A stretch of 64,000 bases of DNA, taken from contig JAIVFI010000009.1 in the NCBI GenBank assembly GCA_025558095.1, forward strand, positions 496,001-560,000, read 5' to 3'. Position numbers and translations under genes: made by a program. The DNA comes from Hyaloraphidium curvatum SAG 235-1. Taxonomy: Eukaryota > Fungi > Monoblepharomycota. The first letter of the stretch is position 1; each line of letters starts with the position of its first letter. Positions 40,132 to 50,699 of the stretch are shown piece by piece. Below the pieces are notes generated by a model that did not search any database, had not been told where the DNA came from, and worked only from the letters and a program-made list of their open reading frames with translations.

Positions 40132-41802
40132 ATGGGTGTAGGATTCCGCGTTCCCCGGCACTCTGGCGCCCCGCTGACCTTTCCTTCGAACATCAGGGCG
40201 GAGACCTCAACTTGAAGAGTGAGTCTCGCTCGGTCTCCGTGGCCTGGGACCTTCTCTGACCACGGTGTCCCGCAGAGAGCTGGCATCCTGCCACGCTTCG
40301 CAACATCGAGAAAGTATGGCAGACGGAGCAGAAGGCCGCGGCCGAGAAGCGCAAGGTGGACCAGCTGCGCAAGGAACTGGAGGAAGAGAGGCAGAAGGAG
40401 GAGCTGAAGAAGCTCCACGCGGCAGCCAGCGGAAAGTGCGTTCCCCGTTGCTGCGCACCGCCCCCACCGTACTAACCCGCTTCCGGCCTTCAGAAAATAC
40501 CAAGAAAAAGTCGACTGGATGTATTCTTCGGGGCCGATGGGGTCCGGAGCTACGCTGGCGGATGAGCGCGAGGAGTTCCTGCTCGGCCGCAAGAAGGTGG
40601 ACAAGATTGTGGAGCAGGGGACCAAGGTCGAGGAGCTGAACCCGACGACGTCGACGGCGCACGCGCGGACGGGCAACTCTGTTTACGGTGCCACCGCCAA
40701 TACCCTGCGCGACATGCAGTCCAAGATCCGGGACGACCCTCTGCTGATGATCAAGAAGCGCGAGCAGCAGGCCATCGAAACGACGCTGGCCAACCCGCTG
40801 CGCGTCAAGGAGATCAAGGAAAAGGTGGAAAAGACCAAAAAGGAGAAGAAGGAGAAGAAGAAGCGCCGGAAGGACTCGGACTCGGATTCTGACGACGGCA
40901 AGCGCCGCCGCAAGCGATCTCGATCTCGCTCGAGATCGAGATCGCCTGACAGGAGGCGGGAGCGGAGTCTTGACAGGCGGGACAGCGACCGCAGGCGGGA
41001 GCGGTCGCCCGAACGGGATCGCAGGCGCGAACGGTCGCCTTACGGCCGGGACGGACGGCGGGACAGGGAAAGATCCCCGATTGACAAGCGGCGCCGCTCT
41101 CCCGAAGATCGAAGGCGCTCGCCGGACGATCTGCGCCGCCCCTCGCCGCATGATGCGCGGAGGCGTTCGCCGGACGATGCACGGAGGCGGTCGCCCGAGG
41201 ACTGGCGCCGCAGGTCGCGTTCGCCGAGACGCGACGGTCGTCGTTCTCCGGTTCGCCGCGGTCCGAGCCCCGGTGGCTCGGGAGACAGCGGCGGCGACAG
41301 GCGCGACAGCTATCGGCGTATGGAAGGCTCTCGCGTGGAGAGGGACGGCTTTCGTGGAGAGCGCGAGAGGGATTTCGGCCGCCGAAGCCCCCCTCGTTCG
41401 GACTACCGCGCAAACGGATACGCAAACGGACGCGAACGGCCCGTCAACGGACACGGGGCGCAGAACGGGCATCGCGATCCGCCCCGGGACCCCGAAGCGG
41501 AGAAGAAGGCCAGGGAGGAGAAGCTGAGGCAGATGATGGAGGATGCCGAGGAAATGGACACGCAACGCGAAGTGCGCGTGCAGGAGATGGCCAAGGAACG
41601 GGCCGCCGAGGAGGCACGGGACGCGGCGGAGAGGTCCAAGAGGCTCAAGGAGAGCTCGGGCTTTGCGGGCACCTCGGGCAGCGATGCGGGCTTCCTCAAG
41701 GGCATCCAGTCCAACATTGTCTCCGGCGGTGCACACTCTGCCGCCGATCTCATCCAGCGGCGCCGCAACAATCGCCAAAGGGACGATAGTGACTTCCTCT
41801 GA
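40132..41802 (+). CDS. CWC25: Pre-mRNA splicing factor Cwc25
   Basis: Spliced N-terminus MGGGDLNLKKSWHPATLRNIEKVW; DWMY, EEFLLG, KIRDDPL.MIK; RS-rich region. Confidence 0.93.
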
Positions 41803-43089
41803 TGATCGAAGGTCGGTTGGCGAGCGCATCGAGATGCCCGGCACCAGCGGAGAGACATTATTTCTGTTGTGCAATTGTATGCATTGGTCGATCTAGATTT
41901 TCCACGTCGCCTTGGCCTCGATCGCGGTAGCCTGTTGGCGCCCGCCCCCTTTTTGGCCAGCGCTGGCCGGAGCGCGCCCACGGGCGACTTTTGTTTTTGA
42001 TTACCTGGGGATTGAAAAATCTATTAAGGAGAATAATGTTTACTGACCCGAATCCGGAGCCCGTTTCCACGCCATTTTGCGCGATTCTGGCCCATTCCCG
42101 GCTCTCCTGGCGCGTCTCGAGACCTCCCGATTGCCTCCCTGGTGCTCGATGTGGAGTTCTGCGGCGCCGGGGTCCAGGACTTGGTGCTCTTCCCGGACCT
42201 TGCGCGGAGTCGCCTCGCGGGCTGCAGTCCTCCTGGAAACACGGTTATCCGATGATTTTATCTTTTCTATGGAGCAGTTGGCCAGTGGAACCTGAAGCAA
42301 CGCGTTCCCGGACTCTTGGGGCACGGAAAACCATGCACATCTCCTCGCTGTGACGCAACGCGGGTGCCTTCGAGCACCGCGCGCCGAGAGCACGTTTGGG
42401 AACCTTTAGAAACCTCAGGTACGGGCGGAATGGGCCGCGTCGCTCGTGTGCTGCAGGATTTGGCCGGCTCGAAGTTTGTCGCGCTCGCCCTTCGAATGTG
42501 CTCATTTCTTGGCTCTTCGCTCCGTCGGATGTTCGTTGGAGGAAGCTCTTTCAGCGTGTCACGTGGATCTTATGGCGGGCTCGCTGCTCACGGACTGTCG
42601 ACGCTCGAGACGCGCTACGCGCCGTTGGCGCGATCTACCTGTTGGAATCAAGCGCAACGGGTTCTTTGGTGAAGAGAGCAAATGTCGTTTTGATTGCTTT
42701 TGTTTGGGGCTTCACGCGAGGGACGCTTGGTCCCCTGGTCACCTCAGATGTGGCCAACTTTGCGCCCACACTTCAGAACCCCCTCCCGAGAAGCGGCTGG
42801 TTGCCGAAGATGGAGAACACAACATGCAGGATTGCCGATGCCATGTGGACGAGCAGCTCCGTGGCCGATGGTGACCTGTCTGCCTCCTCGTGTACGTTTC
42901 CCGCAAGACCATCTCGATTTCGCGGGCTTGGCATCAAAGACGGAATCAAATGAATGGAAATGACTGCTTGAAACGCAGATAAGGATGCAGTAATGTCGAG
43001 GAAAGGATTACAAGAGGATATGGTCTATCTTGGCATCTGCCCCGTCCTCCGCGCCTCCCCACCCCTGGCACAGATCGTGAACGCCCCGT

Positions 43090-44143
43090 TCACGTTTCCA
43101 GTCTTGCCATTTGCTCCGCAACCGCCGCTTCGAAGCTACCGCCGTCCCTGGAGGAGAAAAACTTGATCGACTTGATCGTCGCCTTGACCAAGTTCCCGTT
43201 GGTTCTCAGCTTTCCTGGGTTCCGATGATTGACGTTCACGGAGTGCTTGGAAAGCAGATCCGCGTACTTCCGCGGCTCCCGTTTTTGCCCTTTCCGAAGA
43301 GCTGACAGGTGGAAGGCGGCAAGCAAGAGGAACTGCTCTCTCTCAGCCGGATGGTCCACGATATTCAACGGTGAAGCTTTCCCGTTCGAACGGGCGCGTC
43401 CGACGAGGTCACTGGAGCTGAACGAAAGGCGTCGCGTGCCGTCAGGCATGGTCGCCTCGAACTGCGTCCCGAACGGGGAGTGGAGCGAGACACCGATGCC
43501 GCGGCGCACTCGCTGAGCAACGGAAGTCTTGGTCCGTTCGCGAACCTAAAATGAACAATGATTAGAGGTGCTACGTCTTCAAAAGACGGGGAAAGCTCGC
43601 CTGTTCGCGCTCAAACTGTGCCATGAGCGAGTTCATCGCGAGTGACAGCCACGAAGTAGCCGACGGCGCCGAGCCGCTCCAGAAGAAGGTCAGCTCGGGC
43701 TGGTTGACGCAAACGAAGGATTTTCGGGCCTGGGTGAGCTCCTGAATGTAGCTGTGGGTCGCAACCATGTCGCGAGACAACCGGTCCAGCCGGACGACGA
43801 CCAGGCCGGCGTAGTCGTTCGAGGCGAGCAAGGAGACGAATGCAGCATGCAATTCCTTCCGTTCGAACGCCCCAGGCCCCTTGGGCAGTGCCCCGCTGGC
43901 CAGTTCTTCGTGCACCGCGACGACAATGTCCCCGCGCGCGGTTGCCCAGTCCCGGATGATCCCGATCTGATCCACGAGCGACAGATTGTCGCTCCCGTCG
44001 TCCAGCGACTTTCTGACGTAGGCAATCCAGCGCAGGCCTCGCCCAGATCCGAGCTGGGCCGCCGAGGCATAGGTTCCGAACTTTCCAACGAGCGAAACGA
44101 GGTGGGACACGTCCAGCGCGTTGGAAGCATGCTGGGGCTCCAT
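43090..44143 (-). CDS. Serine recombinase (resolvase catalytic domain plus recombinase-like DNA-binding domain), 332 aa, one GC-AG intron
   Basis: AYVRKS (nucleophile Ser), SL..Q, E.ASG, ER.EL, VVRLDRLSR; helix E AQFEREQ|VRERTK restored by intron 43600-43546; SPFG, P.ERE, ADLL, TIKSI in exon 2. Confidence 0.9.
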
Positions 44144-45962
44144 CTCCGCCCAGAAGGACAATCAGCGGCCCGCAATGAAGCAGGAGAGGGCCAAATGCAA
44201 GCTCGATCGGGATGAGGAGACGGTGGCGGGTCGGTTTCGGTCCCTGAAGCGCGACAGACGTTCCGCACGAGAGACAGGGGTACCAGAGCGTCACACACAC
44301 GAACTGAGCCCGCAACCGGCTTGAACATGAGCGCGAGCGACCATAGACGGGCCGGAAAGTGAGGAGGAAGGGGTTCAAAGACGTCAGACAAGGGGTTCGA
44401 ACAGGAGCTTCGCGGCACCTACATCGCGAGGCCCCCAAGCACTGTACAGCCGTTGGCTGCCCCAACGGAGGCACCGAGGATCTTTTTCCGGTCCAGATAG
44501 GAGCGAGAATGGGGGAGAACACGGCCGTTGGTCAGGATTCGTGCCACGAAACGGCGGAGCACGAACCGACGGGGAAGGAATGTTCCGATGCGCCGCCGTC
44601 CAGAGGCAGCAGGAAGCAGACGACACGGCCGCTGGACGTCCGGCTTGGTGCTCTCTCGTGGCACCGGTCGGGTCTCCAGCCATCGCTATCGGAAACCGAG
44701 CGGAGTTCGGGGGAGTCTATCCAAGGGCTCCCTTGGATAGACTATCTGAGACCCGCCGCCGAACCGCGATCTTGGAACTTCACTACACGCTATGCTAGTG
44801 CTCGGATCTCCTTCCCGAGACCAACTAGGATAGAAGAGATGTTGTACTGCCCTCCCTGGGGAACTCAAGGCCAGTCATTTGCTATTCAGGTCGCAGGACC
44901 GCCGAACGTGAGCGAGCGTCTCGAATTCACGTCCCGTCGAGCCTGGTGGGGAAGGGACGATATGGAGGAAACGCCCAAATCCCGACAAGTGCTAATCACA
45001 TTTACATGCGTGGTTTGGGAGCGCAAGAAGAGCTCCGCAGGTCTCATTCACTCTGGGCCGGGCTTGACAGCTGCACACTTGAATGGACGTCCGGCATCTC
45101 GTCAATGCCGAGCAGCAAGATGCTCGAGGGTTCTAACGTACCATACATTGTTTAATAAAGTCATTTCGATGGATGATGGCTTTCTTCCATCCTCTACTGG
45201 TAAGCGAGCGCCGCCGGAGCTCCATGCATGGCATGCTCAAGTTTGGGACCTCGCGGACCCTCCGCATGAGTACGTGAAGTTGTCCAGAGCTGTGAGGCAT
45301 TAGAACTGCATAAGAATACGCGATCTGTTGCAAGGCCGCGTCGATTGAGCTGCCTGTGCGTGAACGCGGGCGGTCGGCGCGGACCCATTTTGGCCGATTT
45401 TGAGCCGTTCCCGAGCCATCCCGCTCACAAAACGCTCTGCAGCACTGCGAGGCGTGCCGATTTCTCAAGTAGTAGTATGAAAGCGTCGAATTCGGCCTGC
45501 ATCTCAATTTCGGTCCGGAGCACCTCGGGGACCCAGACCCCCCCCCTCGTCGGTGCAAATCGACGCCGATGGCGCGCAACCACGCACCAAACCCGGTCTG
45601 CTCCGCGTAATGCGCTGACTCGATGTATATAAGTGCGTAGAAGCTAGAACGGCTACCGGCCAGCGATTTTCGCTTGGTGTAGGTGGTCCAGCAGGTCAAG
45701 ACTAGCCGGTCCGACGCCCTCCCCCGATGTAGTGCCACTTTGCGCCGGTGTGTCGAGCTCCTCAATCCTGGCATCAAGCACATGCCTTTCTGTGCATCGC
45801 ATCACCTCTACGATGGCCGCTGGAGCCGATCCAATCACATCTCTGGCCACATCCGAGCACGTACGATCGCCTTCCGGGTCCGTGTTCACCAGGACGGTCA
45901 ATGGGGACTTCAGATGAGTTGCCCTGCTTCAATTCCACAATCAGATACATGAAACCGATCTA

Positions 45963-48900
45963 TTACTTTGGGAACTCCGTCACAAGAACCACCTTCAACG
46001 CCTCGTAGGCTTTCAGACGGGGGCCACGCAGCGTGGCATCCTTGGCATCAAGGAGGTCGAGAAACTCTCCCTCCAGGTAGGCCCAGTCGGGACCTCCATC
46101 TTCCGCGCGGCGCGTGCCGTAAGCGGGGATGGTAATCTTGCGCTGCGTGTCGTCGCTACGGCGAAATCCATCATCGCAAAGGCCCAGCCGATGGACATGA
46201 GCAGCCCGGCATTTCTCCTCCTTGAGCTGCCCGCAGCGCCGACATAGCTGAGCTTCATCCTTTGGGGCATGCCCTCGCACCTTGGGCTTCGCGGGTTCCA
46301 TGGCCGAAACAGCAACTTCCTGCAGGGTCAACGAAGGAGCGACCTGTCGGGCCAACTGACGTTAAACCACCAGCGCGACAGCAGAGAGAAGCCGGTATGC
46401 CGCTCACCAAAACAGTCGAAGCACCTTGGACGGGCTTCTGGGCCACATGAGCGAAGGCAGCGAGGAGGGCCTCGGCCCAAGCCTCTTTCGAGATCTCGGG
46501 CGGCAAGTGCAGGGGCCTCGGCACGTGCTCGAGCAAAGCGGGCCCAGCTGCCAATGTGGAAGCATCGGGTAGAGCCAGAGACGATGTTGTCCCAGGCGCG
46601 GGCGGCATGGCCCGCTTCTTAGCGGCCGGAACCGACGTCGAGGCCGGCCGCGGTGCCACCGGCGAATCTGCCCGTCCCTGAACCAAATCCTCACGTTTCC
46701 GCTTGCCGCTCAAGGCCATTGCACCGCTTGACGGCTGAAAGGCGACGGGCAAGGGCGCCGGCGTCCTGCAAAAGACGAGGGATGAGCTCAGAAGCCGAGA
46801 TCCGAAAATGGCGTCCACCCACTCCAATACAGGCTCCACAGGCCGGTTTAGAGCCTGCACGGGCGCGGAAGAGAGAGAAGGAACAACGGGAACCTCCAGC
46901 ATGTCTTCCTCCATAGGAGACGAAAGAGGCTGGCTTGCAGCGGCAGTAGAGGCAGCCTTCGGCGACATTTGGCTCGAAGGTCGGGATGGAGACAAAATGA
47001 CCGGCGAGAACAAGCCTGAGGTGGCTACAACGGCGGACCCGAGCTAAAGAACGCCGACATGTTGAGTAAACCATGAATCCACGCTATCGCAATAACCAAC
47101 CTCGGCAAGAGTGCGCTGAAAGTCGGCCTTGATGCCGTAGTTCGGCGCGGCTCTACCACGAGCTTTCGGAGACGGCGACGGCTTGTGCGAAGGACGACTT
47201 TTCGGAGTGAATCCGCGAGGCGAGGCGGGCCGCGCCTTCGGGACAGCCGGATCCTTTTCCCTTTCGGCGACGTAGGCCTGCTGGTCCCGGATCGCCTTCC
47301 CGGCTTGCCGTGCTTCCGCCGAGGTGACGGCACGAATCTCAAAACACTCGTGATCCTCCAGAAGCGGGTTGCATTGTGCAGGGTGACCATTCTGGCGAGC
47401 CAAGCGGTTCCGAGCTTCCAGCATCTGGCAAAGAGCCGGATTCCTGCCCAACTGCTGGGCGTAAAAGTCGCCGAATTTGATGCGCAACACGGTCAGCATG
47501 TAATCGAGATCGAAATGGTCAATCTCCTGCAGGATGGTGTCCTCGAGCTTCGCGTGGCGGCCGAGCCAGTCCTGCAGAAGCCGAAAATAGCCCTCGAGAC
47601 GATTGCTTCCCCTAGCAACCATCACTGAGCCGTCTGCCGCGATGTAGAACAAAATCTCTGGATCGTCCAAACACCCCCTTTCCAGGTGCACTCGAGCGTT
47701 TGCCCAGTTCTTCTCGAACACCTCGACCTTCTTTGGAGGAAGACCGCCGAGGTACCGAAGAGCTTCGTTCTTAGCGGCGTCGAAGGCCTTGACGGCTTCC
47801 TCGCGCGGCAGCATCGGCTGCGGCGTCTTCTCGCCGCTGGGGAGCTCAACTCCCGGGAACTGAATGGAACTCCAAACGATGCCGATGATCTTGTCCTTGA
47901 CAAAATCCGTGACCCCGACGTCCTCGCAAATCCGTTGCACCCAGTGGAAATGGTCGAGACGTACGACCACGAGATCGCCAAACACAGCCTTCACGAGTGG
48001 GGCTAAAGAACCCGGCGAGCCACAGCACCGGTCCACTTGGAGCACGATGACCAGAGTCCCCGGCTCCTCAAAGGCGCCGACAGATTTCCCCGAATCGAGC
48101 TTCTTTCCGTCGATTCCACGGCCCGCAGCCTTCTGAGCCCGCAAAGAGTTACGAAGAACCTCTAGGCCGTGCTTGGCTGCGTCGTCGCCCTTGTTCCGGG
48201 CCATGTACTGCGAACGTCGTCAGAAGTCCCGCTGCATGGGCAGCGCCGAGCGGCTCACCGCGCCAAGAGGAGTACCAGTCGCGGTGATGTACTTGATCAG
48301 CTGAGGTTTGCTGCTCATGGACTCGGCCGCCACGCGGCCGCCGTTCGCCTTTGCAGCCGCATCCTTCTCGGCATCCGCGGCAGCACCGCCGTCAGCATGC
48401 TTGCTGGAGTTGAGGGCCTTGTGGCCCCCATTCTCCTCGTCGTGCACGTAAGCTTGGTGCAGTGCGGTCTTTTCCAGTCCGTCCTGCGCAATGTTCCGGC
48501 CTGCGCGGCGGAGATGAGCCAAGCAGCGAAACCAAATCCGTTCCGCCAGAACCCACAGTCAGCCTGGTACTGATACGAGTGGAAAAGAAGGTCGCCGTAT
48601 CGGTTCCAAACTGCTTCGTGTAGACGAGCCACAAAGGCGGCGTCGATCACATCCCCGGCCATTCTGACGCCAAGTCAACACGCAGGCGAAGGCGCAGCCC
48701 GAATCGCGGCCCAACTCACGAGAATTCGTCCTCCATTGACTCCTGGATCGACTGCGGCTTCTTCCCGCTCTGCCGGAAGAGGCCGGCGAACGTCGGTACG
48801 GTCGTGCCGTCGGAGGGCCCCGCCTGAGAAGGTGCCGAGTCGTTTTCGGCCGAGTCTGATCTCACGACAAAGGAATCCATGCTCGTTTGTTTGGATCCCG

Positions 48901-49979
48901 AAGAGTCTATGGGAACGGAGTCACAGCGTGTCCTCACGATGCCACACAAAAGGTTACCTGAAGAGAAGAATGCGCTGGTCGTCTCCGCATCCGGCATGGG
49001 GCCATGCTTCCCGTGGTGTTGAAGGTGCAGCGCGACGACGTGATGTTCGGCCTCCAGGTCGGCTGGAACCGAGATGTCACGAAAGGGCAAGAACCAGTTC
49101 AGAAAGAGCCGTACCGTTCAGGATCTTGGCCGCCATGCCCGGCCCGCACTCGTTCACCAGGTTGTAGACCTTCGAGAGGAACGACATGTGCACGTACGAG
49201 TGGCCGACCCGTTCGTAAGGGAACACTGCCGACGAATGATTAGCAAGGTCGACAAGATCGATCAGGGAGCGGTTCCTACCGACGTAGCGCAGGTCCGCGG
49301 GAATTCTGTCGAGCAGGTTGTGGGCACCAATCTGGAAGGTGCACTTCCCCGCCTTGGCTTCCCCAAAGTTCTCGCAAACGTATCGCCGGGGGCAAAGAAG
49401 TTCCAACTCTCCATGGGGCCCACGCATGAGGAAGAGATCTTGAACCCAAGCACTGGGCTTCAGCTTCAATCCGCACGTCGGACAAATGAGCCGCGCCAAG
49501 TCCGGGTAGCCCTCCCAGGGAGAAAGGATGAAGGTCGGCCGAAGCGTCACGAGAGAATCCATTTCCGGGGTTCCCGGCCCGTTGAGGACCTTGAAAATCG
49601 GATCCCCTCCATCCCGGAGGACGAAGCGCTCCGGATGACGTCGTAGATCGAAGGGAAAAGGCTGGAGACCATGGGTGAACGGGGTAACCTTCTTCCCCGG
49701 CAACCTCCTCTTTTGGGCGGCCGAGAACTCGAGCTGGAAGGCCGTTCCGTGCTGAGGACGCCCTTCTGGAGGTGCCTCGCCCGCCGAAGCTTGTGGCTGC
49801 TGTCCGGCGGGCTCCCCTCCGCTTTCCGGCTGCCCGGCCGGCGGCGCTGCGGTCTTTGGCGGGCGACCGCGCTTCTTCGTCTGCTTTGGTGCGTCCGAAG
49901 CCTTCATCGCGGGGACCTTAGCCTTCTTCACGCCGCCAGAGACCTTCTTCGCGCCGCCCGTGTTCCGGTTCCGACCCAT
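45963..49979 (-). CDS. DUF6729-type DDE transposase-like protein (about 8 introns)
   Basis: AT-hook KKRGRPPK; F.LSP..CPTC..L...Y.C..C.F...L...P..LR..FP; putative catalytic NIAQDG (48481), QVDRCCG (48031), VRLDHFHW, RGSNRLEGYF (47593); C-terminal CRRC..H..C. Confidence 0.78.
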
Positions 49980-50295
49980 GCCTCCGCTGGCCCGAGAAGT
50001 CGCGTCGAGACGCGACGGTTCGGATCAGTTGGCCTCGTCTTCGGCGCCAGAGTCCTTCCTAGAGCTCAGACTGCCCTGCTTGCAGTCATTCCCGTCCAGA
50101 ATGTCCCCAGGGGATGCTTCAACAGAGGCCTCGTCTCCTCCCGGGGAGAGGAAGCTATAAACCGTCGCGACACGCGGGAAGGCGAGGCTCCTCGCGACAG
50201 TAGCGTTGATTCGAGGGCAGAGAAGGCTACGCCGACGCGCGTCTGGGACGGGGCCGGCGCGCAGGTGGCCTCTCAGGGGGTTTGGCCCGGTGGGG

Positions 50296-50362
50296 GAGGG
50301 TTGGGGAGGGTTGAAAGAGGGTTGAAGAGGGTTGAAGGAGGGTTGAACCGGGTTGAAGGGTT
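50296..50362. repeat. Seven GGGTT(GAA) units at about 10.5-bp spacing
   Basis: GGGTT starts at 50298, 50308, 50319, 50329, 50340, 50350 and 50358. Confidence 0.85.
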
Positions 50363-50699
50363 TGGTCTAGTAAACAGATCTATATCACGCCGCCCACGCC
50401 TATCAAAGCCTGTCATCTCCTCGGGCATCCCCCGCCCAAACTACCGGCGCCTGCGGCACGGGTTAGTTTCCTCCCGCCTTTTTGCGACAGGCGCCACCAC
50501 TTCCCGCGGCGGCCGTTGTTGCCGGAAGGGCACACGGCCGGGAGGTCGTGACGCCTATCGCGACGCCACTCTGTCCTCCCCACGCTTCAACCTCTCACAC
50601 ATATCTGTGCTGCTGCCCAATCAGGTCCCGTGCTGCCGTCGGCCATCCCTACCATCACCGGCTGCTTCGTAACCCGATCCGGGTGAGGACGCCGCCGCG

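Follow-up and report, generated by a model that had tools for sequence, protein, structure and literature searches.

An 8.4-kb mobile DNA element of Hyaloraphidium curvatum carrying a serine recombinase gene and a large transposase-like gene

The locus was analysed in contig JAIVFI010000009.1 of the aquatic fungus Hyaloraphidium curvatum SAG 235-1 (GCA_025558095.1), and all coordinates are positions within the window, i.e., the whole stretch of 64,000 nt that was analysed (496,001-560,000 of the contig, forward strand). As originally predicted, a block of DNA was found inserted between CWC25 and the gene for the V-ATPase a subunit (VPH1). The block carries a serine recombinase gene on the minus strand and, co-oriented with it and upstream of it, a large transposase-like gene. 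The features are as follows.

40519-41802: CWC25 (PF12542), one neighbour of the inserted block
41976..41982: left 7-bp target-site duplication GCCCACG, identical to 50392-50398
41983..50391, minus strand: the whole element (8,409 bp), with both genes on this strand
41983..42070: left terminal region, beginning GGCG, which matches in inverted form the CGCC at the right tip
42037-42048: subterminal motif TGTTTACTGACC in the left terminal region, read from the sequence itself
43090..44143, minus strand: serine recombinase CDS, 332 aa, exact match to the annotated protein P0001
44143-43601, minus strand: recombinase exon 1
43600-43546, minus strand: recombinase GC-AG intron
43545-43093, minus strand: recombinase exon 2, followed by the stop
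44144..44800, minus strand: 5' leader of the recombinase transcript, based on splicing seen in the transcript contigs (run X2)
44320-44422 and 44482-44566, minus strand: two GT-AG introns of the leader, from spliced transcript contigs
44714..44743: perfect 14-2-14 palindrome of 30 bp, AGTCTATCCAAGGG-CT-CCCTTGGATAGACT, a candidate site of the recombinase, for recombination or as operator
44801..45962: variable spacer separating the genes; 44857-45134 is missing from the copy on contig C4
45963..49979, minus strand: transposase-like gene, 10 exons, CDS of 3,519 nt, 1,172 codons
49979-49280, 49225-49115, 49062-48958, 48906-48720 and 48663-48557, minus strand: transposase-like exons 1-5
48500-48259, 48207-47101, 47043-46823, 46765-46408 and 46343-45966, minus strand: transposase-like exons 6-10, followed by the stop
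50296..50358: tandem array, subterminal on the right side, with about six GAGGGTTGAA-like units
50392..50398: right 7-bp target-site duplication GCCCACG, identical to 41976-41982
From ~51119: V-ATPase a subunit (PF01496), the other neighbour of the inserted block

The limits of the element were determined by aligning its copies. Besides the copy in the window (contig C9), the H. curvatum genome contains two more full copies and two truncated ones. The full copies, on C9, C4 and C34/C46, all contain both genes within the same ends, and the other copies match 41983..50391 at 97.6-98.1% identity over the full length, while the flanks differ. Thus, the two genes, which had been proposed to form a single mobile element, occur together in every full copy. 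The true ends were found at 41983 (GGCGAYTTTTG...) and 50391 (...ATATCACGCC), slightly outside the 42037-50376 proposed earlier, with five left junctions aligned to define the left terminal region. The 8-bp inverted motif TGTTTACT/AGTAAACA, previously taken for the ends, is present at 42037-42044 and 50369-50376 but is subterminal, and the terminal inverted repeat is only 4 bp long (GGCG/CGCC at the tips). The repeat array noted at one end was kept in all right ends aligned.

The original prediction had also reported no target-site duplication; with the true ends, a perfect 7-bp duplication, GCCCACG, is found directly outside the limits common to all copies. The C4 copy is flanked by its own perfect 7-bp duplication (CCGGACC on both sides), and such duplications were accordingly present in both of the complete, uniquely placed copies (C9 and C4). 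In the copies that lack matching duplications, the unpaired left 7-mers (CCGGAGC and CAGCTCG) and right 7-mers (CCCAACA and CCATAGG) did not match as sets, and an exchange between two copies as the cause of the unmatched duplications was rejected because the sets disagree. Shared ends, different flanks and a fixed-length duplication are the general criteria for eukaryotic cut-and-paste (TIR) transposons, and all were observed here. Moreover, the C34 and C4 copies differ by 3 substitutions in 8.1 kb, indicating very recent transposition. The segment 41983-50391 is a DNA transposon that is autonomous and has been active recently, and it moves as one 8.4-kb unit.

Both genes of the element are transcribed and spliced, as determined from transcript contigs, which contained nine spliced joints of the transposase-like gene; coverage falls upstream of ~44800. 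The recombinase is intact in every copy, and each exon of the transposase-like gene has an open frame in C9, C34 and C4. Between subfamilies A and B, divergence was 0.70% in the recombinase CDS, 2.16% in the transposase CDS and 4.6-5.2% in the introns and the spacer, with the spacer at 44801..45962 showing the highest value in the element (5.16%). The pN/pS was 0.13 for the recombinase versus 0.46 for the transposase (Fisher p = 0.0013). Judged by these values, the recombinase is the best-conserved and most constrained part of the element, and the large gene is also under constraint.

In the case of the recombinase, the predicted assignment was borne out by PF00239, which matched exon 1 (E 2.9e-13) and P0001 (E 2.5e-17; 63.8 bits against a cut-off of 23.3), and the genome scan agreed. 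The catalytic domain of P0001 starts at residue 40, and R44, S46, D120, R121, R124 and E178 were invariant in an alignment of 26 family sequences. The family profile aligned to the catalytic domains of TP901-1, Gin and gamma-delta at 1e-33 to 1e-25. The AlphaFold model (pLDDT 85) aligned best to the Bxb1, SPbeta and PhiC31 integrases, over ~288 columns, whereas the small resolvases aligned over only 150-165. This alignment includes a recombinase domain after the E-helix; the zinc-ribbon/coiled-coil region is absent, as the protein ends at residue 332 with only short helices beyond the recombinase domain in the model. Accordingly, the modelled fold is that of a shortened phage integrase-like enzyme consisting of a catalytic domain and a recombinase domain. 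A search of viral contigs with the recombinase gave no match.

The large protein was searched for family membership as ORFs and as individual exons. Pfam hmmscan of the ORFs and each of the 10 exons gave no family at E<=5, with only a weak AT-hook, and NCBIfam gave no match to the exons. For DUF6729, which was named in the original prediction, membership is defined by a PF20499 match above 27 bits; no exon matched PF20499 at E<=5-10, and the six-frame genome gave nothing at E<=1, a weak scan in which the control genomes were equally silent. A PF10551 genome scan matched three other loci and not the element. No match was obtained in a word search with a 386-aa ORF of the gene, and no relative in a metagenome scan with exon 7; the single-sequence AlphaFold model of this exon was unusable (pLDDT 40). 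Only a language-model feature search pointed toward DUF6729: exon 1 was placed near DUF6729 clusters (0.89) and also CxC clusters, which is a lead only, and exon 7 near MULE fragment clusters (0.93-0.94). When read by eye against the Mutator/MULE D..D..E triad with C/DxxH after the second Asp, DVIDAAF in exon 5 and LQVDRCC, RLDHFHW and SNRLEGY in exon 7 were noted as motifs of no statistical support. As a lead, the large protein may thus comprise an AT-hook, a DUF6729-like Cys-rich N-terminal part and a core that is MULE-like in its features, and its identity as a DDE transposase of the DUF6729 type is weakly suggested. A literature search found no paper mentioning DUF6729.

The palindrome at 44714..44743 occurs exactly once per element copy and falls within the transcribed leader of the recombinase. 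Its core, CAAGGGNNCCCTTG (CAAGGG-NN-CCCTTG), occurs a single time, at 100-600 bp upstream of the recombinase gene, both in H. curvatum and at five loci of other organisms, namely, three loci of Chytridium lagenaria and two metagenome lineages, among which the central dinucleotide varies. The core was absent from 45 distant recombinase loci, and its genome-wide background was at control level. Since the core recurs once upstream of related recombinases, the palindrome is probably the site of the recombinase, for which it is a candidate. It could also be only a regulatory or RNA element, given its position in the transcribed leader. A site on contig C3 with the same core was dismissed as a chance match because it has no extension beyond the core. 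Further half-sites in the window and the genome were chance-level singles, with no accessory subsites, and the CAAGGG core is not present at the element ends (GGCG...CGCC). No cointegrate, circle or palindrome recombination product was seen, and the transcript data examined contained no joined-copy or circle junction.

Related recombinases were compared with regard to their neighbours. At two C. lagenaria loci, the recombinase follows a large co-oriented gene, and the order large gene, palindrome, recombinase is repeated at both. The upstream large gene of C. lagenaria gave a sub-threshold DUF6729 match. Homology was sought between the exons of the large gene and the large proteins that neighbour related recombinases on their upstream side; tblastn and blastp with all exons gave no matches, and phmmer gave nothing. 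A word search with residues 60-620 of P0021 returned only P0021 itself. The hhalign score against the small C. lagenaria family profile was 14.3, which is inside the range of 30 shuffles (10.6-23.7); a by-eye motif alignment, considered as a sign of homology to the C. lagenaria upstream protein, was therefore dropped. At another C. lagenaria locus (L019), the recombinase has no detectable large partner within 10 kb, and in H. curvatum a second recombinase family resides in a ~3.5-kb repeat beside an ORF with a GCR1_C domain, without this large gene.

The pairing of a transposase with a serine recombinase is known from bacterial Tn3-type transposons (TnpA, TnpR and res). Like the Tn3 family, the element carries an insertion enzyme of inferred DDE type together with a serine recombinase, has a single candidate recombination-type site by the recombinase gene between the two genes, and leaves a short target duplication. 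Unlike Tn3, it resides in a eukaryotic host, has spliceosomal introns in both genes and shows no Tn3-type transposase domain in its exons (Pfam, E<=5). The terminal inverted repeat is 4 bp versus ~38 bp, the duplication is 7 bp versus 5 bp, one palindrome stands against a three-subsite res, and the integrase-like recombinase of 332 aa contrasts with a 185-aa resolvase with a helix-turn-helix. Membership in the Tn3 family was accordingly rejected on the ends, the duplication length and the transposase family.

A 7-bp duplication is unusual for Mutator-like elements; this length, the 4-bp terminal inverted repeats and the lack of a profile match for the large protein are observations that speak against a DDE/MULE reading. 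The likeness to MULE and KDZ elements lies in the placement of exons 7 and 1 by the feature search, the large size, the big transposase with a Cys-rich, zinc-chelating N-terminal part, the similar duplication length, and the weak or absent terminal inverted repeats of some members (PMC11343200). KDZ (Kyakuja/Dileera/Zisupton) elements are fungal DNA transposons of 6-11 kb with extra ORFs (PMC11343200). Unlike these groups, no Pfam model (MULE, KDZ, DUF6729 or Transposase_mut) matches any exon, the duplication is 7 bp versus the 8 bp reported for KDZx1, and the accessory gene encodes a serine recombinase with a candidate cognate palindrome, which a literature search found reported for neither group.

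Large serine integrases have a zinc-ribbon domain with a coiled-coil motif and are 450-700 aa long. The recombinase resembles the large serine recombinases (Bxb1, PhiC31, TP901-1 and SPbeta; TnpX/TndX) in its catalytic residues, long E-helix and recombinase domain; it differs in its length of 332 aa without the zinc-ribbon/coiled-coil, in a candidate site that is a symmetric 30-bp palindrome and not an attP/attB pair, and in being encoded with introns in a eukaryotic transposon. In IS607 enzymes, in turn, a MerR-like DNA-binding domain at the N-terminus precedes the catalytic domain, and the recombinase acts as the sole transposase without a target duplication. In eukaryotes, IS607-family serine recombinases are represented by Lachancea kluyveri genes (PMC2715888) and Fanzor-associated elements (PMC3627910). 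The present enzyme is similar to these in being a bacterial-type serine recombinase with several copies in a fungal genome under purifying selection, but its catalytic domain is N-terminal, the IS607 model (NF033518) fails at 16.6 bits versus a cut-off of 110, and 7-bp duplications are left.

The 7-bp target duplication implies staggered cuts by a DDE-type transposase, and the enzyme making them would most likely be the 1,172-codon product of the 10-exon gene; the recombinase would not perform the insertion. A recombinase dimer would bind the 30-bp palindrome and recombine two copies of it, and the recombination would resolve joined element copies, namely, cointegrates, dimers or transposition-induced rearrangements, in the manner of Tn3 resolvase and res; the recombinase may also regulate its own promoter. 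Replicative transposition with cointegrate resolution by the recombinase is what we infer, by analogy, from the layout, in which each element has a single conserved palindromic site located between its genes. The explanation as a whole, a DDE-type transposon whose recombinase binds the palindrome and resolves joined copies, is considered moderately probable.

Alternatively, the recombinase and its palindrome may be a passenger that plays no part in transposition, either cargo or a selfish module that was captured or is nested. In favour of this, related recombinases are found without a partner or beside the GCR1_C ORF, so that the recombinase could be a self-interested module; no homology could be demonstrated among the large upstream proteins of different species; and additional ORFs whose function is unknown are reported from KDZ transposons (PMC11343200). 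However, this passenger would be the most constrained part of the element, intact in every copy and transcribed, the gene order recurs at the two C. lagenaria loci, and nothing seen within the element looks like a nested unit with ends or a target duplication of its own. The passenger reading is possible but rather on the unlikely side.

That the serine recombinase itself mobilises the element, as in IS607 or Tn4451/Tn5397, with the large protein being no transposase, would agree with the integrase-like fold, with the missing family match of the large protein and with the recombinase-bearing repeats that lack this large gene. Strand exchange by serine recombinases, however, takes place at a 2-bp overlap and produces no duplication of the 7-bp type, whereas two copies have perfect 7-bp duplications; the lack of the CAAGGG core at the ends, the N-terminal catalytic domain, the low IS607 score, and a large gene that is open, spliced and constrained also argue against it, leaving it very improbable. 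Two adjacent independent insertions, the alternative named in the original prediction, were rejected by the copy alignments, and these together with a segmental duplication in place of a transposon are extremely improbable. Over 8.7 kb of right flank, contig C46 and C9 are ~100% identical, as a segmental duplication would be. Against this, every full copy encloses both genes between the same ends, the left flanks bear no relation to each other, and each of two copies is flanked by a 7-bp duplication of its own. Moreover, the left flank of C46 equals that of C34 at 99.99%, and C46 is the sole A/B chimeric contig, changing from B-type to exact C9 sequence at ~48.9-49.0 kb and not at the palindrome; by these joins, it is explained as a contig overlap or chimera.

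Eukaryotic DNA transposons are normally described as single-enzyme elements. The original prediction knew of no eukaryotic equivalent, and the literature search likewise found no eukaryotic element with a DDE transposase plus a serine recombinase. If the proposed explanation is true, a two-enzyme design would be added to eukaryotic DNA transposons, the bacterial logic of a transposase plus a site-specific resolvase would exist in the nucleus, and how a replicative DDE transposon could be tolerated on linear chromosomes would become a testable question. A eukaryotic counterpart of Tn3, i.e., a replicative DDE family in zoosporic fungi (Monoblepharidomycetes and Chytridiomycetes) in which the compact, dedicated recombinase and the 30-bp palindrome resolve joined products, is considered unlikely; if it were true, unresolved joined products would wreck linear chromosomes. 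The element family also accounts for a number of chytrid gene models that are unannotated or mis-fused. Furthermore, it offers small (~330 aa) serine recombinases natively expressed from spliced nuclear genes, with a predicted, simple and symmetric 30-bp site that differs among family members in its central dinucleotide and outer arms. Such compact recombinases with their predicted sites would be appealing candidates where orthogonal recombination tools for eukaryotic cells are sought.

The transposase-like gene and the recombinase gene were found to lie in a repeated DNA element, whose ends were set by alignment of the junctions of its copies. The features of the window are as follows.

40519-41802: CWC25 (PF12542), left of the element
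41983-50391: element, 8,409 bp, beginning GGCGAYTTTTGTTTTTGATTACC... and ending ...AGATCYATATCACGCC
44143-43601 and 43545-43093, minus strand: coding exons of the recombinase, with a GC-AG intron
44714-44743: perfect 14-2-14 palindrome between the genes, within the recombinase leader
49979 to 45966, minus strand: large gene, 10 exons
Right of the element: V-ATPase a subunit (PF01496)

The matches to PF12542 and PF01496 identified the flanking genes and confirmed the position of the block between CWC25 and VPH1. GCCCACG was present directly outside both ends of the window copy (contig C9), and CCGGACC flanked the copy on contig C4 on both sides; these 7-bp duplications indicate staggered cuts. 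The original prediction had reported no such duplication, which was missed because the inverted pair TGTTTACT/AGTAAACA is subterminal. The pair itself is real, but its members lie 54 bp in from the left end and 15 bp in from the right, and only GGCG/CGCC is inverted at the element tips. The repeat array predicted at one end was recovered as about six GAGGGTTGAA-like units at the right end. A diverged V-ATPase a-subunit paralogue was also located at C9:573308-575958 (68-88% identity in pieces), approximately 13-16 kb past the window end and 27 kb downstream of the window's V-ATPase a-subunit copy.

Further copies, whose search had been proposed as a check, were obtained when the predicted 8,340-base block was searched against the 32-Mb genome: full-length matches on contigs C46, C34, and C4 at 97-98% and partial ones on C37 and C39. 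The 8 kb left of the block was unique in the genome except for the adjoining 54-57 bp, and since similarity ended there, the block is a repeat with defined limits rather than part of a duplicated region. Subfamily A comprised the C9 copy and the right 2.5 kb on C37 (100% identical to C9), and subfamily B comprised the C34 and C4 copies, with 97.6% identity between the subfamilies. As C34 and C4 differed by 3 substitutions in 8.1 kb, one of the two is a very recent insertion. In the case of C46 (C46:167224-184331; loci L002 and L022), the left flank equaled that of C34 (99.99%), the element was B-type up to approximately 48.9 kb of the window, and the sequence thereafter was exactly that of C9, including 8.7 kb of the right flank of C9 up to the contig end. 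C46 was judged from this pattern not to be an independent copy; the pattern fits overlapping contigs, a chimeric assembly, or an exchange that took place very recently. The full copy on C34 (C34:536620-545034; L003) was bordered by CCGGAGC at its left end and by CCCAACA at its right end, two 7-mers that differ, and a simple exchange between two duplicated copies did not account for them. The copies on C39 (C39:485037-485554; L015; left 350 bp of the element only) and C37 (C37:528968-531647; L014; window 47889 to the right end) broke off inside the element and passed there directly into (GGTTAG)n telomere repeats that close the contigs. In both cases, a chromosome end was healed within a copy of the element.

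The gene structures were determined by aligning contigs of three public runs to window 44000-49999 (6,000 letters). Contigs of run X2 left out stretches of 51-103 nt bounded by GT..AG on the minus strand. No joints of this type were present in the contigs of the two DNA runs; run X2 behaves as a transcriptome. Nine joints defined the 10 exons of the large gene, and what had seemed to be independent middle ORFs are exons of its C-terminal part. Its coding sequence of 3,519 nt (1,172 codons), with the frame followed per exon, was open in C9, C34, and C4, while C46 carried small indels. The recombinase exons exactly matched the annotated 332-aa protein P0001, and the transcript contained two further introns in a leader reaching approximately 44800. 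A DNA contig of run X1 matched the element from window 47213 on, preceded by 241 unrelated GC-rich letters, and may come from a further copy, truncated or rearranged, in this sample.

The recombinase was 100% identical to the NCBI protein 'Resolvase [Hyaloraphidium curvatum]' (P0001) and clearly matched PF00239. HMMER, run exhaustively against 1.84 billion representatives, returned only 331 proteins at E<=1e-3, and the top family consisted of zoosporic-fungus proteins (Chytridium lagenaria) and metagenome contigs, with C-terminal-domain matches in Batrachochytrium salamandrivorans and Homolaphlyctis polyrhiza. The catalytic residues R44, S46, D120, R121, R124, and E178 were invariant across a 26-sequence alignment. 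The family profile matched the TP901-1, Gin, and gamma-delta recombinases at 1e-33 to 1e-25 and reached into the recombinase domain of the Bxb1 and SPbeta integrases. Moreover, the AlphaFold model from the same alignment (pLDDT 85) best matched large serine integrases over approximately 288 columns, while small resolvases matched over 150-165 columns only. Because of these profile matches and the predicted fold, the recombinase was assigned as an integrase-like enzyme that lacks the zinc ribbon and coiled coil. The IS607 type, to which the serine recombinases known in eukaryotic mobile DNA belong (PMC2715888, PMC3627910), was rejected on model search. Longer chytrid proteins (P0013, P0016-P0018, P0020, P0022-P0024, P0026, and P0032-P0034) carried two copies of the C-terminal domain (recombinase residues ~199-302) with the catalytic domain absent, one example being a 768-aa 'DEP domain-containing protein' of B. 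salamandrivorans. The domain may here have been co-opted for binding DNA.

The large protein was searched exon by exon. No Pfam or NCBIfam model matched any exon, the PF20499 and PF10551 models run over the genome gave no match at the element locus, and a word search, a metagenome scan, and single-sequence fold prediction gave no identification. The closest language-model feature neighbours were 'MULE transposase (fragment)' clusters for exon 7 (0.93-0.94) and, for exon 1, DUF6729 clusters (0.89), then KDZ-type CxC clusters. DUF6729 membership was not confirmed, with PF20499 lacking a match at the locus. By eye, motifs in the exon translations resembled the Mutator D..D(xxH)..E pattern. Judging from the duplications, feature neighbours, and these motifs, the large protein is probably an unclassified DDE transposase.

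Each element copy contained one palindrome. In the C4 copy, its right half-site was triplicated (TTGGATAGACTCC x3; C4:372339-372400), and 278 bp (equivalent to window 44857-45134) were deleted approximately 115 bp away; this copy otherwise differed from C34 by the 3 substitutions. Short-spacer inverted repeats near related recombinase genes shared the core CAAGGG-NN-CCCTTG, which occurred exactly once, 100-340 bp upstream of the recombinase, at three C. lagenaria loci (L019, L020, and L021) and in two metagenome lineages (L028/29 and L030/31). The central dinucleotide (AT, GT, AG, GA, TT) and the outer arms varied. This pattern of 12 fixed bases was present 7 times in the 32-Mb genome (4 in element copies, 3 elsewhere), compared with 3 occurrences of a reversed control pattern, and in none of 45 distant recombinase loci fetched as controls. 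It was also not found in the distant family members L026, L032, and L034, nor in the second recombinase family of the genome. A serine-recombinase crossover site is symmetric and sized for a dimer; its inner core is conserved and its central pair varies. The palindrome looks like such a site and is a candidate; it could also be an operator. The closest longer relative, metagenome contig L026 (recombinase 45% identical, intron position shared), carried a different upstream palindrome at L026:715-738, GAGTTCAACC-nnnn-GGTTGAACTC, whose arm is similar to the GGGTTGAA units of the right-end array in the H. curvatum element.

The order of large gene, palindrome (CAAGGGNNCCCTTG), and recombinase, all co-oriented, recurred at two of the three C. 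lagenaria loci. At L020 (JAHLKC010000018.1, first 19 kb), the arrangement was tandem: the large gene came first, then a 250-aa N-terminal piece, the palindrome, and the recombinase, and these were followed by another large-gene paralogue and, where the contig stops, another 250-aa piece. Gene model P0021 fused a 1,100-aa upstream protein to the recombinase, and paralogues of this upstream protein flanked the P0010 locus. Residues 75-161 of P0021 matched DUF6729 below threshold (E 0.0016, 18.5 bits; cut-off 27). The shared layout is suggestive but not proven because hhalign scored the C. lagenaria upstream protein against the H. curvatum transposase no better than shuffles.

Divergence was compared between subfamilies A and B.

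Divergence between subfamilies A and B
Intergenic spacer: 5.2%
Introns of the transposase gene: 4.6%
Transposase CDS: 2.16%
Recombinase CDS: 0.70%

The transposase had a pN/pS of 0.46, from 31 synonymous and 44 non-synonymous changes, and the recombinase one of 0.13 (5 and 2), and the two coding sequences differed (Fisher p = 0.0013). Although the counts are small, both genes have been maintained in working order, the recombinase more strictly.

Two independent insertions side by side, the alternative in the original prediction, were excluded. Mobility driven by the recombinase itself is unlikely because of the 7-bp duplications and the unrelated element ends. The main rival, possible if rather doubtful, is that the recombinase and palindrome form a hitch-hiking module. 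It is favored by the C. lagenaria locus L019, which has no partner gene, and by the second H. curvatum serine recombinase family (37% identical), which lies in a ~3.5-kb repeat (4-6 copies at 87-97% identity) beside an ORF with a GCR1_C domain (upstream, L018:2870-4282). Crypton elements have this domain.

Loci of the second recombinase family
C22:420213-423740 (L017)
C2:638221-641904 (L018)
C9:336628-341290 (L016)

On C9, two copies were arranged head to head as an inverted pair around a 36-bp centre. Separately, a ~1.15-kb repeat (L017:6643-7773) and an associated 318-bp piece (L017:1-318) occupied at least 40 genomic places at 93-97% identity, often clustered on C5, C17, C36, and C42; this is taken to be an abundant, unrelated transposable element.

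A literature search for a eukaryotic element combining a DDE enzyme with a serine recombinase found none. The likeness to Tn3 originally proposed holds for the layout, but the element did not fit that family in its ends, its duplication length, or its transposase family. The closest eukaryotic elements are the Mutator-like and KDZ transposons, which are likewise large and carry extra ORFs (PMC11343200), but their profile models do not match the element. On balance, we lean toward a division of labor in which the DDE-type enzyme would insert the element and the recombinase would recombine two element copies at the single internal site. The role of the recombinase would then be of the resolution type, as in Tn3, and perhaps also autoregulatory.
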